NCBI GenBank assembly: GCA_047495785.1
Contig: JBLDXI010000032.1
Location: forward strand, 1,426,001 to 1,490,000
Direction of reading: 5' to 3'
From: Lepidodermella squamata
Lineage: Eukaryota > Animalia > Gastrotricha
DNA: 64,000 nt
The notes below the pieces were generated by a model. The model did not search any database, was not told the origin of the DNA, and saw only the letters and a list, made by a program, of their open reading frames with translations. Numbering within the stretch: the first letter of the stretch is position 1; each line of letters starts with the position of its first letter. Positions 51,767 to 59,897 of this stretch are shown here, piece after piece. Made by a program: the position numbers and the translations under genes.

Positions 51767-54700
51767 GTTTTGCTGAAAACTAGTGACTGGAACTTTTCTA
51801 TTTTGTTTTGGAACATTCATTCGGGTCTTAAAGCTGAAAACCACATGAAAACCCTGAAACAATTCTTAATCTTTGCCTTGGTCGAAACCTTCGGTACGGA
51901 ACCAAAGTCTATATCTGGTTACGCAATATTCTCCGCCCCTCCTGTTCGTGACATCAATACCAAAAGTATTAGTGGCGGCATGACCGTCGCTATTCGTAAA
52001 GACTTGAAACCATCCTTACTTTTCTCTAATGAATCGATAATTCTAGTTAGAGTCCAGGCAAAATTGTTACGTGGCGTGAATACCATCATGGGACTCTTTA
52101 TCGTCTATAATCGACCATACTCGGCTACCAGTCAAATTCAAGTTTTAGAAAAAATAACTAGTTTACATGACACTTATTCATCGACTTATGACGTTCCTTT
52201 GTTAGTCGGAGACTTCAACATAAGAATAGGCAATCAGTCGGAAACCTTAACTGATGACGAAGCTTTCTACCCACTAGCGCCTCGCAGATCCAAGGACACT
52301 AGTGTATCCACCTCTAGCGTGGTCAAACATTTTTTCTCTATGTGTAATCATATGTCCTGTTATGTCGCGAATGGTCGCTGCAGTGGCGACCGTCAAGGCG
52401 AATTCACCTTTGTTGGCCACAACGGTCAATCCGTGATCGATTACTGTCTCCTTCCTCCAGATTTGCTGGCGAGCAAATTCTCAACTTTTTCTGTTCGCCA
52501 GGATATCATTAACTCTGACCACTTTCCCATAGCATACTATTTGAAATCAGATGAGATCACATTTAAGCAGACTAGCGCTTCCACGTCTTATACTAAGGTG
52601 CACTTCGATTCAGGTGCGTTCCATAATCACCTTTTAAATACTGACATCGACTCATTTGCGGATAACTTACCTCAAATGCCTAACGATGCTTTGCGCTCTA
52701 CGCTAGATCTTATCAGTAATTTTGCCACTAGAGGCCACATCCCTTATGATACTAAAATTATCGAGGCCGACTCGACCCGCCCGGATGTCGGGGATCATGT
52801 GAATTTTTGTTTATACAGAAAACAAGCTAACGCCTCGCGCAAAATGCGCCGCATATTAAATCGTAACAAGGAAATATCAGTAATCAACAGCGATAAAACT
52901 AAACGTTCTCTCTGGGTGGCTTTCAAAACAGCGCCTCTTTCTCCCCAAAATCAACCGCAGATGCACGAATGGGTCGAATTTTTCGGGGAGCTCTACCGAA
53001 ATCGGAATGTTGTCTCACCCCCACTCGAACTCACAACATCAGACCCAATACTGGATGCTCCTTTGACTATTGACGAAGTCAAAATGGCCATAGAACTTCA
53101 AAAAGCAGGTAAGGCGCCCGGCCCGGATGGTATTACAGCTGAATTCATGCAACACAGTGACCTGAATGTTTCTTTTTTCAGCAAGACGCTCTTTAAAATT
53201 TTTGAACCGTGTTTCCTTAGCTACACCCTGCCATCGGGACTAAATTTGTCTCTGTTTTGCACCTTGTTCAAAAAAGGTGACTCCTCTAAGCCGGACAACT
53301 ACCGGCCATTATCTCTTTTATCCGTAATATACAAAACTTATTCTACTATACTGAAATTGAGACTGGAAAAGTGGTGTAGAATTCACTCGATCATACCTGA
53401 AGAGCAGTTTGGTTTCGAAAAAGGATTATCGCGCTTACACGCGGCTTTCGTCCTTCAGTCGTTGGCGACGTACCAAATCCACGTTCGCGGTAGAATGCTC
53501 TTTATATGTTTAATCGACTTTACTAAAGCTTTCGACTGCGTTCCTCACAACCGTCTTATATGGAAATGCCAGCGATTAGGTATCTCATCTTCCTTTGCCA
53601 AGAGATTGAACTCTCTCTATTCCGACGCTAAAGCCAAAGTGCGAGTTGGCAGCAAACTGTCTATTGCAGACATCGCCATTGAACGCGGTGTTAGACAGGG
53701 TGACGTCTTAGGTCCCCTAATGTACAATCTGTATACCGCCGATTTGCCTCTTCATCTGGCTGAGAATGCCAAAAATCTATCAGACATTCCTAAGTTACTT
53801 TCTACCAAGGTACTTTGCGTATTATATGCGGACGACTCCACACCCACTGCAACTAACGCGGTGGATTTGCAAATACAGATTGATGCTATGTCGACGTATT
53901 CTACTAGAGAAGGGCTCAGCCCTAACCCCGGTAAAACGAAAGTTATCATTTTTTCCCAAGCTCCTGTTTCACCTGACCGTTACTCCTTTAATATGAACGG
54001 CGTACCTCTCAAAGTTGTAAAATCTGATTTCTACCTAGGCGTACCGATATCCAGCGACTTGAGCTGGTTTGAAGCTATTGAAAATGCGCTTACACGTGGC
54101 AATAGCTGTTACAACGCTCTTTCCTCTCATAGGATCAAATTGAGTATGATAGAACGCAATAACTTGGATACACTATTTTGTAGCAAAATTGAAGCGGCGA
54201 TGCTTGCAGGCTCCGAACTCTGGGGCCTCTTCGCCCCTAGCCGTGTTGCTAAATTGGACAGCGTCTGTTATAAGTATTATAAAAGAGCGCGCGACATTCC
54301 GTACAATGCGTCTAGTTTATCAACTGGTTTTGTTATGGGACTTATTCCCCCTAGCCTAAAGGCGAAACTCAATGCAGTCAAGTTTACATGTGAGCTGACG
54401 AAATGTGCCAACCCCTTAGTGAATGATGCTTTTTCTTTTTACTTCCATTCTCGTCCGAAGATGGGTGTCTTAAATCCCATCCACGCAACTCGTAAATTTC
54501 TATTATCCTACAATCTGCCTCCCGACTTCTGGTTTATGCGTGACCCGGCAGTCATGGAGCAATTTTTCAACCTAGTCAAAGACTGCTATGTTTCTGAACT
54601 ATCTGTCAAATTTCATAATAAATATAATGCCAGCTACCTATTAGCCAGGGACGGTTACTTTGGCATTAGTAAGATATTCGAAAATTATCCACCTGACCTT

Positions 54701-55091
54701 AGAAATACTGCTCTGCGAGTCGTCACGAACACCGTCTTTCGCCGTATCGAACATTTTATTTTCAGAATTGATGATGTTACATGTATGTTCTGTGGTAACG
54801 TTACTCCTCTGAGCCAGTTAGCCTACCATATTTCTTACGACTGTTTATCTGTTGCTGGCCACGACCCTGCAAGGCTGCTTAGTGCTGACAATAGAATTGT
54901 AAAAAATACCTTAATTTTCTTCAAACGTCTGGAGAAAATAGTTAGCACAGCCATTCAAACTACTGTCTGAGGATTGGCAAATTACCTTTGACAATAGGGC
55001 TTTCCTCTGCCCAATGATCTAATTTGCTTTCTAGGGATCCTGAGGTTCCCTAGTTATGAGGGCAGGCAGGCAGGCAGGCAGGCAGGCAGGC
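51234..55091 (+). mobile_element. Non-LTR retrotransposon (APE-RT-CCHC), truncated within ORF1, with (GGCA)n tail and 13-bp TSD
   Basis: TSD TGGCAGATGTCCA at 51221-51233 and 55092-55104; (GGCA)7 at 55061-55088; hairpin at 55031-55053. Confidence 0.93.
51767..54970 (+). CDS. LINE ORF2: AP endonuclease, reverse transcriptase, C-terminal CCHC
   Basis: WNIHSG, VET, VGDFN, SVIDY, SDHFP (APE); KAPGPDG, NYRPLSLL, QFGF, DFTKAFD, GVRQGDVLGP, YADD (RT); CMFC...H...C. Uninterrupted over 1066 aa. Confidence 0.97.
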   Translation, partial: VLLKTSDWNFSILFWNIHSGLKAENHMKTLKQFLIFALVETFGTEPKSISGYAIFSAPPVRDINTKSISGGMTVAIRKDLKPSLLFSNESIILVRVQAKLLRGVNTIMGLFIVYNRPYSATSQIQVLEKITSLHDTYSSTYDVPLLVGDFNIRIGNQSETLTDDEAFYPLAPRRSKDTSVSTSSVVKHFFSMCNHMSCYVANGRCSGDRQGEFTFVGHNGQSVIDYCLLPPDLLASKFSTFSVRQDIINSDHFPIAYYLKSDEITFKQTSASTSYTKVHFDSGAFHNHLLNTDIDSFADNLPQMPNDALRSTLDLISNFATRGHIPYDTKIIEADSTRPDVGDHVNFCLYRKQANASRKMRRILNRNKEISVINSDKTKRSLWVAFKTAPLSPQNQPQMHEWVEFFGELYRNRNVVSPPLELTTSDPILDAPLTIDEVKMAIELQKAGKAPGPDGITAEFMQHSDLNVSFFSKTLFKIFEPCFLSYTLPSGLNLSLFCTLFKKGDSSKPDNYRPLSLLSVIYKTYSTILKLRLEKWCRIHSIIPEEQFGFEKGLSRLHAAFVLQSLATYQIHVRGRMLFICLIDFTKAFDCVPHNRLIWKCQRLGISSSFAKRLNSLYSDAKAKVRVGSKLSIADIAIERGVRQGDVLGPLMYNLYTADLPLHLAENAKNLSDIPKLLSTKVLCVLYADDSTPTATNAVDLQIQIDAMSTYSTREGLSPNPGKTKVIIFSQAPVSPDRYSFNMNGVPLKVVKSDFYLGVPISSDLSWFEAIENALTRGNSCYNALSSHRIKLSMIERNNLDTLFCSKIEAAMLAGSELWGLFAPSRVAKLDSVCYKYYKRARDIPYNASSLSTGFVMGLIPPSLKAKLNAVKFTCELTKCANPLVNDAFSFYFHSRPKMGVLNPIHATRKFLLSYNLPPDFWFMRDPAVMEQFFNLVKDCYVSELSVKFHNKYNASYLLARDGYFGISKIFENYPPDLRNTALRVVTNTVFRRIEHFIFRIDDVTCMFCGNVTPLSQLAYHISYDCLSVAGHDPARLLSADNRIVKNTLIFFKRLEKIVSTAIQTTV

Positions 55092-55190
55092 TGGCAGATG
55101 TCCAAGAAAAGCTGGGCTCCTTGGCGACGAAGAAGATGTCGAAGCCAGAATACGTCTATCATCTGCGGCCTTCGGTAAAATGAATAAGCT
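55092..55190 (+). pseudogene. Older decayed RT fragment that served as the LINE insertion site
   Basis: With frameshifts reads WQMSK/KLGSL/LGDEEDVEARIRLSSAAFGKM, the KxLGS...I..RI..A..AF motif that follows the RT core in RTE-type LINEs. Confidence 0.65.
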
Positions 55191-55605
55191 AATAATGAAT
55201 TTATTTTACTTGTGATGGCGGCTAATCCAGTTGCTTTGCAAACCTGCATTTCACAACTCTTATTATGTTTTATGTTGTAAGGCATTTCGTGGGTTTTCCC
55301 GCAACGACTGACTTGCTATACAAAAGTATCTCGGGATTTTAACAGAACGCAACGAGCGTCGCGCATTTCCATTTTTAATTATCACTTCCACGAGTCTTAT
55401 CTTCAGTGGCATCTATGTTGTTGCTTGTTGCAGCGTTACGCGTGGCATGATATCTGGTGGATTCGATTTTCAATTTGTTTAGATTATCTCAATTGCATAT
55501 GGAGTACTCATCATTGGTTAATTTCTAACTTCAGTACTTGATATCTTAACTTGGCCGCCCCTTAGTGCGTTACATTGTTGTATTTTGTATTCCGTTGGCT
55601 GAAAC

Positions 55606-57284
55606 ATGGCTGCACCATTGCCGTTGGCTGTCGTTGCGGTGGGAGTTGGTGGTGCAATTGTTGGAGCTGCGGCCTTAATCTCTGGTGCTACTGTAGCTAC
55701 GATTGCATTGGTGAATTTGATGAATCCTTTCCATCCTGATGAAGAAGATCTTGTCGCTAATTCGAGTGACCAGCCTGATTTGTGTGACATCAATTTATAC
55801 TTCGTTCAGCTGAAGTTCTCCAGATCTGCCTTCTTGCACACTGCGCTCTACGTTGAACGCAGTTCATCAGCTGATGCACGTAAAATTCGTTATTTCTACG
55901 AAGTCAACGGCGCTGATGCTGGCATTTGCGAAGTGTTGCATGCTGTTAACGAAAAGGTGGAGAGTATTCTGAGTGAAAAAATCCTGATTGCTTCCTTAGC
56001 AGATTACTCATGGAACATGTTCCTGTCTCGCTTTCTAAAAAAGCAACGCCTGCCATTTTATTCGTTGTTTGATCAAAATTGCAGTCATTTTTGTCTGCGC
56101 ATCTTGGATTCGATGAAAAATGATTTGAAAAGTGGTGTTAATTTGGAAAAGGTCGAGGAAGTGAAAACGTTTTTGCTGAAAACAATGGGTAGAGATAACA
56201 TAGCCCGAGGCGCATTTTATCCACTAGCTACTGCACTCAATCGTTCAGATGCTTCGAAGGGCTTTGGTGGTTCAAGCAAAAAATTATTACCCGTTACATC
56301 CGCGAGCGTTGTCTTCCATTTCTGCCTGAAGGTCGACTCTTTTGACGCCGACATAAAGAATCGCCCGAAGTTAATGGTAGATAAGGCAAATGCTGATCTA
56401 GTCGGTAAACTGAAGAAGTCTCTGATCACCGATTTTTCATCACTACTCCCTCCGTCTTACTTCAATTGCTGTGATAATGAGCAATCATGCGACTGTCCGA
56501 AAAAAGTTCTGGTCAGACTGATAGAAAGCGGCTCGGCAAATGGAGTTCTATTGTTCGGACCCCCAGGCATAGGAAAATCAGCCCTAATTGCTGCTAGCTG
56601 CGCCGCTGTTTCGAACGATTTCGTCGTCTTCAAAATCACGAATAGCCTCATTGAATACTCCATGTCCGACGCAAGAGACCGTATTCAGCTTTTGCTGGAC
56701 ATGGCTCAGTGTTATGCCCCATCAATCCTAATTTTTGACGACGTTGAGGACCTACTAATGGACCCTCAGACTGCTTCTATACTGCGAAGCCGCCTTGACT
56801 TGTTACAATCTGAGTCGCATCGTGTTGTTATTTTGGCGAGTTCGACTAGTCCTTGGAGCCTAGAGCACGCTCTACTGACCAGATTTATTCCTGTTTATTT
56901 GAGGTTTGATCGTCTTTAATTGCATTCAACTCATTTATCTCTAGTTTTCCTAATTTTAGATTGCCTTCGCCAGTTAAAAGAGCTAAAATGCTGAAAGTAT
57001 TCACTTCGAAAACTCGTGCTGACGACGAGCTCTCATTCGAAGATTTATCCGATTTGCTGAAAGAGTATTCACCACGTGATCTTGCAAATTTATGCAAACT
57101 GGTCAAAGCTTCCGTCAATCCGCCAGATTTTATGAAAGCATCTGATTTTCACGCTGCTGCTCGCATCGTCAAGCCTACTATTTCGTCCAGAATGCGAGGA
57201 GTTTACGACCAGTGGGCTGAGAATCGTGACACGTCTACCTTATTGGACATTCCTGAAAAGGCTGGAAATCCGCCTCCTTATTAG
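55606..57284 (+). CDS. Hydrophobic N-terminus + H-box/NC (LRAT/PPPDE-like) domain + Vps4/spastin/katanin-type AAA ATPase; intron 56904-56959
   Basis: FLHTALYVE (H78), YSLFDQNCSHFC (C159); Walker A GVLLFGPPGIGKS; Walker B ILIFDDVE; VILASSTSPWSLEHALLTRF; Vps4_C-like DFHAAARIVKPTIS...YDQW; ends NPPPY. Confidence 0.8.
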
Positions 57285-57480
57285 TGATTTCTAACTTACC
57301 ATGACTTCTTTTCTTCCTTCAATCAGGGTGATATATAATCATATTTATTCCTGTCTTCCTCCTTGAAACTTACAATTTTGGAGTATTTTTTTGTTTGATC
57401 GCTGATAAAATCAATTATTTGCTGATTGCTGAGATGTTTTACCAATAAAATTGTTGGAATATCAGATTTTAGACCACCGA

Positions 57481-59897
57481 ATGGCGAATTTACTAAATAT
57501 TGTAACATTGGCGTTCCTGTTTTGCAACTCAATATTTGCCGAAGATGCGGTAGAAGAAGGAAGTACTCGCATGCCAACTCTTTGTGAAGGTATAAAAATG
57601 CTTAAAAACATTCGGTTTTGAGGAAAATTTATTATTTTTCAGTCTGCAAGCACTTTACCCATGAACTAACGGATCGGCTCGCCGAAACCGGAAAAACATC
57701 TGAAGTTTTACGTTCTGGTCACGGTTTAGACGCGAGTAAGCGGCAAAAAGCTGTTCAATACAAGAAAAGCGAGTTGCGATTGATTGAATCGCTTCACGAG
57801 CCTCATATCTGCGACCGGTTTCTAACTTACGATGTTCACAAGGAAAAACAAGGCAGCCACCGGTACTCGCGTGGGCGAAGTGAAACTATGCAAACCCTTC
57901 ACGACCTTGTGTAATTTATTCTCAACTTTAATAAGCAAGCAAGCAATGTTTTATTCGATCAAAAAAGCAGACTAGCACCGGCCACCGGCTTTGGGCGCGT
58001 CCTGGAATATTTTCGAATCAACATAATAAATACAGACAAATATATATGTATACATACACGTGCATAACATATAGTTACAATATAAGTTATAATACATAAT
58101 ATAAGGTTATAATACAGATAGTTCTAATCATGACGTGGGAATTCTAAATGAATTGGCGAAGACAGAAAAGAGAGGACAGGAAAATTACGCATTAATTGGG
58201 GTCCCCTACGAAGCAGAAGGCTTCAAAGCAGGGTAAACGCACTAAACAGTCTTCCCAGTAGGCGCTCAGGCTTAGCCTCTGATTTTCAACCAATGGACTA
58301 ACATGATGGTCTGCTATTCTAGCTTTCCACACCAAAATTTGAGGAACGTATGTCATGAAAACTCCGTAATGTAGCTCAGACCTCAATTTGGTCGAAAAAG
58401 TCGTTTTTCGAAATTTTTCCAAAATTCATAAGCCGGGCTCTTAAAGTTATGATGAGCCCATATGCAGAAAATTACGCAGAATTTTATCGTAATTAATTCG
58501 ATTTATTGTTGCGTGGCGTTTGCACCGCTTTTCGGGTTTATATTGCTTTGAAGCCTTTTACTCTGTGGGGGACCCATTAATTGTTATTACTGTTAGGGTA
58601 GACGTGTAATTTAAGAGCGAGTCGGTAGTTAGAAGTTATATGTAGTTGAGATGTGTGACAGTGCGATATTGTTGACGGATTTGCAAGTTACTATGGATTC
58701 GATAATTGAATTGACAAAATTATTAACATTATGATTGATACTATCGAACGAGGCTAGTTGTGTTGGAGGAGTGTGGTTCGGGATAAATTTACATTCAATA
58801 TAGAGGTGGCATATTAGATCTATAGTATCTTGGAAATTTCTAATAGGCGTAGCTAGCGAATCACCATGTTTAAGACAGAAAATGCATTTTAATCCTAAGT
58901 TATTGATATAGCAAAAGGGTTTATGAAGAGAGTTTGTCCTAATCATACTGAGTATCCTAATACTTATTTTTCACCGACCAAAAAGCATTTTGAGCATTAG
59001 AATATAGCAGCAATTTGTCGAAATTTTCGTCTGTAAAAACAGGATTTTGGTATGTAGTTTTTAAATCATTAGCTATAGATTTTGTTGTTGTTTGTTATCC
59101 ACACTTCGTACCACTTTCCAAGATGAGCCAAACCCTCAAATTGAGAAGTGGCGGTGAAGATGTTGGCGCCCCCAAGTTTTTCGACATCACTTTGTAAATG
59201 TTTGAAAATATGGCGATATACATTTTAATTTGCGTCAATAATGTCAAAGGCAGTTTTGATAAGCACATGCTCGTTCTCAAACTTGAGTCGTAGAAAATAC
59301 CTGACGGCTGATTTTGTGAGGACTAGTTCAGGTGGATCGAGGTAGAATTCGCGATTTACTAGTTCATTCCTGGCAGAGGTTGGAATTCGACAAATTTGTT
59401 TCACGAAATGGGTGTTAAATGAGAAAATTTTATTCTTTTTTGTCTGGCCCCGGAGGCCACTGGCATAAGTGTAGTTGCCGATGACGTATGAGTTGTGTAA
59501 AATATTAAATGTTTAAATACTTATCTTCCAACTTTAATAATCCATAATCAAAATCTATTTCTGAATAGGAAGCGTGGAACTAAGGTGGATATTGGCATTC
59601 CTTACGAGTTGTGGGACAAGCCTTCAGTTGAAATCACCCACCTTCAAAAGCAGTGCTATCGCTTAGTCGAACAACACGAAGATGATCTCGAAGAGTGGTA
59701 CATGGATCATTACGACGACGCCTCGGACAATAGCCAAAAATCACTTCTCGAATGGCTTTGCCGAGATCGGGTCTTGCGAAAAGGCGATTCAAGTATGAAA
59801 AATATCAGTTATTTATTTTCATTTATCAATTGAATATATTTTAGGCTGTCTCGTTGAACCGGAAGATGAGGAGAAAACAAAAAAAGGCGAACTCTAG
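57481..59897 (+). CDS. Canopy family ER protein (CNPY3/CNPY4-like); exons 57481-57589, 57643-57910, 59569-59792, 59845-59897
   Basis: Signal peptide; CE|VCK...ETGKTSEV...YKKSELRLIE...HKE...SETMQTLHDLV|KRGTKVDIGIPYELWD...LQKQC; C-terminal KGEL (KDEL-like). Confidence 0.92.
57935..59528 (-). mobile_element. 5'-truncated decayed LINE in CNPY intron 2 with 12-bp TSD
   Basis: TSD CAACTTTAATAA at 57923-57934 and 59529-59540; minus strand YTYASGLRG...KQICRIPTSARNELV...AVRYFLRL and CIFC...HLYIEC; 3' end AATAAA then (TTGC)3. Confidence 0.85.
58191..58581. mobile_element. MITE-like element with imperfect ~40-bp TIRs nested in the LINE 3' UTR
   Basis: attaattggggtcccctacgaagcagaaggcttcaaagca versus reverse complement of the right end attaatgggtcccccacagagtaaaaggcttcaaagca; TTAA at both ends. 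Confidence 0.7.

Follow-up and report, generated by a model that had tools for sequence, protein, structure and literature searches.

A gastrotrich gene joining a putative membrane-tethered thiol enzyme to a degenerate Vps4-like AAA module

The gastrotrich Lepidodermella squamata carries a gene whose 540-residue product combines an N-terminal membrane anchor, a putative thiol-enzyme domain (hereafter the N-domain) and a C-terminal AAA module of Vps4-like affinity. It lies in a window of 64,000 nt (GenBank assembly GCA_047495785.1, contig JBLDXI010000032.1, positions 1,426,001 to 1,490,000 of the forward strand); positions given below count from the first letter of the window, and all features of the gene are on the + strand. 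The gene is real, expressed and under selective constraint. We read it as a lineage-restricted fusion, in which a membrane-tethered putative thiol hydrolase or acyltransferase would be governed by a motor-deficient, nucleotide-binding Vps4-like module, and we give this account about an even chance of being right.

Joining 55606-56903 to 56960-57284 gives 1623 nt, which translate as 540 codons and a stop with no internal stop. The translation contains all the motifs listed in the original prediction, which had described a spliced gene of ~540 residues, and bears out its domain order of transmembrane anchor, H...NC domain, AAA module and PPxY motif. An in-frame TGA at 55600-55602 makes the ATG at 55606 the start and excludes an N-terminal extension. 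The coding part of exon 1 (55606-56903), identified from the open reading frame (ORF) and its translation and tiled by the transcript contigs described below, encodes residues 1-432 and two bases of codon 433. The 56-nt intron (56904-56959) opens with GT at 56904 and closes with AG at 56958-56959. Without splicing, the ORF would extend from the ATG to the stop at 56917-56919; a look-up of this 437-residue ORF found no identical entry. The enzyme-like domain and the AAA large subdomain share one uninterrupted exon and the intron splits off the lid only, so the fusion is independent of splicing.

The locus is present in two public runs, from 2015 and 2024, that are recorded under different organisms and studies. 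One of the runs, X1, is RNA-like by behaviour, though not recorded as RNA: depth is about 3 over the 240 nt upstream of 55543 versus 60-400 within the gene, and two X1 contigs skip the 53-nt GT..AG intron (57587 to 57641) of the neighbouring gene. At the exon junction, two X1 contigs that end at 56903 run on with 20 letters equal to 56960-56979, as predicted. The fusion itself is covered by transcript contigs, as the original prediction had proposed to check: X1 contigs that overlap one another cover 56172-56636, where the N-terminal region passes into the AAA module. In the 5' untranslated region (UTR), an X1 contig that matches the locus from 55565 has a loose end before 55564, with 25 foreign letters placed 5' of an AG splice acceptor (55564-55565), 41 nt upstream of the ATG. 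These letters may derive from a spliced leader or from a 5' exon lying further off; they have no match within the window or in the literature text searched for the string.

Both runs also hold a second version of the locus that differs by ~6% (14 differences in 215 nt; span 55565-57600). The two versions could be alleles in fixed heterozygosity, copies from a recent duplication or forms from sister lineages. Among the coding differences listed between the two versions, 21 of the 33 are synonymous and 12 are not, a ratio of non-synonymous to synonymous differences per site (pN/pS) of ~0.17. The ratio is based on 377 synonymous and 1243 non-synonymous sites; coding differences number at least 33, and there are a further 48 differences beyond those listed. 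Among the differences listed, indels are confined to the intron, where one allele lacks 1 nt at 56938, and to the 3' side of the gene (57419). With most differences synonymous and the indels outside the coding sequence, this is the pattern of a coding gene constrained in both halves.

Judged from its sequence, the C-terminal module is certainly an AAA domain. Pfam AAA (PF00004) matches residues 314-427 with an E value of 2e-15 and 57.9 bits, above the gathering cut-off of 21.2. The large subdomain (residues 301-430, 56506-56895) was also matched by phmmer against the PDB and by the NCBIfam model CdvC. The PDB sequence search matched classical-clade ATPases, namely Afg2, Cdc48/p97, NSF, katanin, Vps4 and spastin. 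Among NCBIfam models, CdvC, the archaeal Vps4, ranks first for each half of the module (E 9.5e-9 for the large subdomain, 7e-6 for exon 2), and its alignment with exon 2 covers profile positions 273-367 of 370, that is, to the profile end. Exon 2 alone matched katanin-like 1 and four archaeal Vps4 entries in the PDB (E 2e-4 to 7e-4). The alignment takes in a Trp-containing helix after the lid, and archaeal Vps4 is aligned through its last helix (E 4e-4 to 7e-4). Residues 433-520 (56960-57221) comprise the lid and the extra C-terminal helix that marks the meiotic clade. The second region of homology (SRH) reads A-L-L-T-R-F-x3-Y-L-x-L-P and has no P-G-R insert; the short RRF-type SRH differs from the R-P-G-R-F-D form of Cdc48, FtsH and the proteasomal ATPases. 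The module is nearest to the Vps4/katanin/spastin group, in agreement with the affinity originally proposed, and membership of the clade is likely. No MIT domain occupies the N-terminal position, again as predicted (no Pfam match at E <= 1 in the protein). A word-index search with the AAA part found no homologue.

Most motor motifs of this module are degenerate. Walker A is intact, with GPPGIGKS at residues 318-325 (56557-56580) fitting G-x4-G-K-[ST]. Walker B reads ILIFDD (56725-56742), where Asp379 of the D378-D379 pair replaces the catalytic Glu of hhhhDE. At pore loop 1, IEYSMSD stands in place of K-[YWF]-x-G-E, with the Tyr shifted by one position and no Gly. The SRH has one Arg (R426 in ALLTRF, 56881-56883) where two are expected. 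These three changes were already noted in the original prediction. In addition, an alignment to Afg2 places Thr414, not Asn, at the sensor-1 position, and the AAA fold is cut short at its N-terminal end, ahead of Walker A. From what is established for AAA proteins, a module of this kind is predicted to bind nucleotide, to hydrolyse it slowly or not at all, and not to thread substrates in the canonical way.

The N-domain is nearly an orphan. HMMER with residues 45-300 against 1.84 billion representative proteins returned a single match, a 273-residue protein that we call P0001 (E 2.8e-8). A profile that included P0001 returned P0001 alone, a word-index search with the N-terminal 300 residues found no homologue, and pattern scans of JGI metagenomes and IMG/VR gave no further relatives. 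P0001 comes from eukaryote-like metagenome contigs that also bear Tudor-domain genes, and lies between two of them (PF00567, E 3e-25 and 1e-6; L002 325-5220, L001 2348-2983). Its layout is that of the gastrotrich N-terminal part, with a hydrophobic anchor at the N-terminus, then an acidic linker, the domain and a tail. In the gastrotrich protein the anchor is the Gly/Ala-rich stretch of residues 2-39 (55609-55722), placed as in P0001; a hydropathy scan (Kyte-Doolittle >1.6) finds residues 1-39 to be the sole hydrophobic segment of membrane type.

P0001 and the N-domain core (residues 60-176, 55783-56133) share 30% identity, and H78, E99, Y152, N158, C159 and F162 are all invariant between them (alignment A3). 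Conservation of H78 and C159, a check proposed with the original prediction, therefore holds in the only homologue. By our estimate the chance that six chosen columns would all be invariant is near 7e-4, given ~30% invariant columns and a single comparison. His78 (codon 55837-55839) stands in the context FLHTALYVE. Cys159 (56080-56082), the candidate nucleophile of the NC motif, stands in YSLFDQNCSHFC. Glu99 (55900-55902) is a candidate third residue of the triad. The core thus displays the LRAT/PLAAT signature, namely an H-box (H78) and an NC motif (N158-C159) with an upstream Tyr (Y152), in the sense in which the H-box/NC motif has been defined (PMC5217272).

Sub-threshold Pfam matches of the core point the same way. 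The best and longest is Peptidase_C97/PPPDE, over 74 residues (E 0.015, 15.6 bits versus a cut-off of 29.2). Lnb_N follows (E 0.019, 13.8 versus 27 bits), then LRAT (E 0.025, 15.3 versus 24.3 bits), which aligns over residues 152-166 only (15 residues). P0001 gives Peptidase_C97 (E 0.036, 14.4 bits) and TseH (E 0.055, 15.0 versus 22.2 bits), also below threshold; the two proteins have no other Pfam match in this domain. All of the sub-threshold matches that include the NC helix align on it. Peptidase_C97, Lnb_N, LRAT and TseH belong to what we take to be one superfamily, the papain-like or NlpC/P60 enzymes in which His precedes Cys.

An AlphaFold2 model of the N-domain from a three-sequence alignment (pLDDT 60.5, pTM 0.56) has five strands followed by helices. 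In this weak model, strand 2 starts at H78 and strand 3, which adjoins the His strand, finishes at E99, with C159 at the N-terminus of a long helix. The first match of an ESM Atlas shape search with the model is an Lnb_N cluster (TM score 0.54 over 99/119 residues). A second PDB shape search, over 987 chains, placed TseH 1st and PPPDE1 (3ebq, 91 residues) 11th, with the longest aligned lengths of all; unrelated folds reach the same Z. ESM Atlas feature searches scored at most 0.79 and give leads only. A first AlphaFold2 model (190 residues, pLDDT 46.9) was discarded as too poor, together with its meaningless Foldseek matches to the Hsp70 substrate-binding domain.

Two independent kinds of evidence thus return the same few families, none significant singly, and on this basis we consider a permuted NlpC/P60-type fold probable for the N-domain. 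Of the two domain calls in the original prediction, the AAA call stands, while the thiol-enzyme call has sub-threshold Pfam matches and a low-confidence model behind it. Lnb_N and TseH are His-first NlpC/P60 enzymes with the triads Asn66-His49-Cys148 and Glu81-His64-Cys172, respectively (PMC11573676). The N-domain could belong with the PPPDE-type isopeptidases or with the LRAT/Lnb-type acyltransferases. In either case a substrate close to the membrane is the likelier one, given how short the tether is.

Between the core and the AAA module lies a linker of no known family (residues 177-300, 56134-56505), for which no Pfam match was found. It is common to P0001 up to a C-D-C motif at residues 295-297 (alignment A2). 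P0001 stops two residues beyond this motif, and here the AAA fold starts a few residues beyond it. No AAA gene occurs within 4.6 kb downstream of P0001, and a split-gene arrangement was rejected for want of an AAA gene beside it. The simplest reading of these sequences is that an AAA module was fused, in one lineage, to the end of a P0001-like gene; the P0001 lineage may instead have lost its AAA part. We read the product as a new domain architecture made from known domains. As the original prediction had supposed, no other protein with an anchor, an H...NC domain and an AAA module was found in searches of the 1.84 billion representatives, JGI metagenomes and IMG/VR. A literature search for PPPDE or permuted-papain domains with AAA found no described fusion among the papers listed. 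Neither result is proof of absence.

The account that we favour runs as follows. The ancestral gene would have encoded a small membrane protein with an N-terminal anchor, an acidic linker, a divergent thiol-enzyme domain (candidate triad His78-Glu99-Cys159) and a helical tail. Its C-terminus would then have gained one AAA module akin to those of Vps4, katanin and spastin. The anchor would keep the thiol domain ~20 residues from the membrane. Acting there on a lipid or a membrane-bound protein, the domain would either hydrolyse an acyl, isopeptide or amide group or transfer it. The intact Walker A suggests that the AAA module still binds ATP; with the usual unfoldase features lost, it is most likely a nucleotide-dependent oligomerisation or regulatory module, not a processive translocase. 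Two PPxY motifs may recruit WW-domain (NEDD4-type) ligases: the C-terminal PPPY (residues 537-540; 57270-57284 together with the stop codon) and a second one that a motif scan added to the original list, PPSY at residues 282-285 (56449-56460) in the linker, which also has a CC pair at 288-289. ATP use and the PPxY motifs argue for a cytosolic bulk. The fold of the N-domain, its catalysis and its substrate are our inference, as are the topology and oligomerisation of the protein and the role of its PPxY motifs.

Several results weigh against this account. All Pfam matches of the N-domain are below the gathering score. Foldseek with the trimmed N-domain model, one of the checks named in the original prediction, returned nothing at E <= 0.001, and the N-domain, compared with PDB sequences both by itself and as a profile, gave nothing relevant. 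Comparison by hhalign with Escherichia coli YiiX (Peptidase_C92), a bona fide permuted enzyme, was not significant; the sole stretch aligned sets a His-containing segment of YiiX opposite the H-box. In the AlphaFold2 model, pLDDT is <50 around C159. The N-domain family has two known lineages only, which leaves a single comparison behind the conservation of the triad. Neither PPxY motif is kept in P0001. X1 depth is zero over 57163-57405, that is, the last ~120 nt of the coding sequence and the start of the 3' UTR, with exon 2 covered upstream of this gap, which leaves the final 40 codons, PPPY among them, unsupported by RNA; the gap could come from a filter, from divergence above a threshold or from an alternative 3' end. 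Finally, the flank after the anchor is acidic (net charge -6), which misfits the positive-inside rule for a cytosolic bulk.

The lack of any significant family or fold match, the low confidence of the model and the unrelated folds with the same Z also suit a different explanation, in which the N-domain is not of NlpC/P60 type at all. The H...Y-x5-NC-x2-F pattern would then be a chance or structural motif in a lineage-specific domain of some other fold, and the protein an anchored, divergent Vps4/Msp1-like AAA with an orphan domain. However, the weak matches come from two methods and two proteins and all fall in one superfamily, the six motif residues are invariant where ~30% of columns are, and the predicted topology puts the Cys at the N-terminus of a helix. 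We regard this explanation as unlikely, though it deserves more weight than the others considered here.

Taken to its full extent, the original prediction would put an active hexameric Vps4/spastin-like unfoldase and a PPPDE-type deubiquitinase or deSUMOylase into one membrane-bound chain, recruited through NEDD4 or ESCRT, with extraction of membrane proteins tied to removal of their modifier. Peptidase_C97 as the best and longest Pfam match, PPPDE1 among the structural matches, the Vps4-type affinity of the AAA module and the two PPxY motifs all accord with such a machine. However, the module has lost the Walker B Glu, pore loop 1 and all but one Arg finger; the N-terminal part of the AAA fold is shortened and there is no MIT domain. 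An active unfoldase is thus not borne out, and nothing ties the gene to ubiquitin or ESCRT, so that part of the prediction is speculation; we think the machine improbable as a whole. We give an equally slim chance to its broader form, a single anchored chain in which a deconjugating or deacylating thiol enzyme and an ATP-driven Vps4-like ring, recruited through PPxY and NEDD4, would combine substrate extraction or remodelling with modifier or acyl removal. The only homologue lacks the fusion and the ATPase motifs are degenerate, which argues for a lineage-specific fusion and not for a conserved machine.

Those same two features would also fit a recent chimera in which the AAA half is a decaying, functionless remnant on a functional N-terminal protein. 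The record of constraint speaks otherwise: among the differences listed for residues 300-540, nine are synonymous and four non-synonymous, with no stop or frameshift. Walker A is intact, and the intron is correctly spliced into the lid exon. Decay of the AAA half is improbable, and a fusion gene with a regulatory, motor-deficient AAA module remains our preferred reading.

Known systems each share part of this architecture. Vps4, CdvC, katanin and spastin likewise have a single AAA with a lid and an extra C-terminal helix and an RRF-type SRH, and give the best profile matches to both halves of the module. The gastrotrich protein differs from them in having no MIT domain, a Walker B with DD, no K-[YW]-x-G pore loop, one Arg, a sensor-1 Thr and a shortened AAA N-terminal region, and in its added N-terminal anchor and enzyme-like domain. 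Msp1/ATAD1 resembles it in the order of an N-terminal membrane anchor followed by one AAA of a related clade, with weak lid matches. Msp1 has intact motor motifs and no enzyme domain, whereas here 260 residues, including the thiol-enzyme-like domain, separate the anchor from the ATPase.

Among the enzymes, PPPDE/DeSI proteins (Peptidase_C97) share the order of His before Cys and the helix start Y-x5-N-C-x2-F, but the His region of the N-domain is outside the aligned stretch. PPPDE proteins are soluble, and we know of no PPPDE-AAA fusion. LRAT/PLAAT enzymes (H-rev107) share the H-box and the NC motif with its upstream Tyr and are membrane-anchored lipid enzymes; their anchor lies at the C-terminus, and a His ~12 residues after the first completes their triad. 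TseH, a permuted NlpC/P60 hydrolase, and Lnb_N (DUF4105), a lipoprotein N-acyltransferase, have a His, an acid or amide residue ~20 positions on and a Cys 80-110 positions on, as here, but are bacterial, periplasmic or secreted, and carry no AAA domain. Lnb is membrane-embedded and acts on lipids (PMC11573676).

A further likeness in domain order is viral. Picornaviruses have a comparable order, 2A(H-box/NC)-2B-2C, in their polyprotein. In norovirus (calicivirus NS1-2 + NS3), one translation product unites an H-box/NC domain with a membrane segment and a P-loop ATPase (PMC5217272). These polyproteins are cleaved, their ATPase is a superfamily-3 helicase and not a classical AAA, and the membrane segment lies between the two domains. 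We treat the likeness as an analogy only.

The gene lies just downstream of an intact 1066-residue non-LTR retrotransposon ORF (51770-54970, + strand) with an endonuclease/exonuclease/phosphatase domain and a reverse transcriptase (RVT_1, E 4e-27). A (CAGG)n microsatellite (55060-55095) stands between the two. In the upstream intergenic region, at 55340-55506, three low-depth (~3) X1 contigs join opposite strands, and no inverted repeat of >=12 nt was found near these joints. Downstream is a canopy/MIR-interacting saposin-like gene (57483-57587 + 57641-57914, + strand; Pfam DUF3456, E 6e-16). Its ATG follows the stop of the studied gene by ~200 nt and an AATAAA by ~30 nt, so packing is tight and operon-like.

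The reach of the finding is limited: it concerns one animal lineage, the motor motifs are degenerate, and the activity and partner of the protein are predicted only. If the machine that joins the enzyme to an active Vps4-like ring were real, it would be the single-chain equivalent of the partnerships Rpn11-Rpt or Vps4-AMSH. Should the N-domain prove to be an active thiol enzyme, the gene would be, to the extent of our searches, the first natural case of a permuted NlpC/P60 enzyme fused to a Vps4-type AAA, and would represent a new, very small eukaryotic branch of the NlpC/P60 superfamily. The gene offers a compact case in which to study regulation or scaffolding of a membrane-held enzyme by a degenerate AAA ring attached to it, and is a clear example of a fusion made where an ancestral gene had its stop codon.

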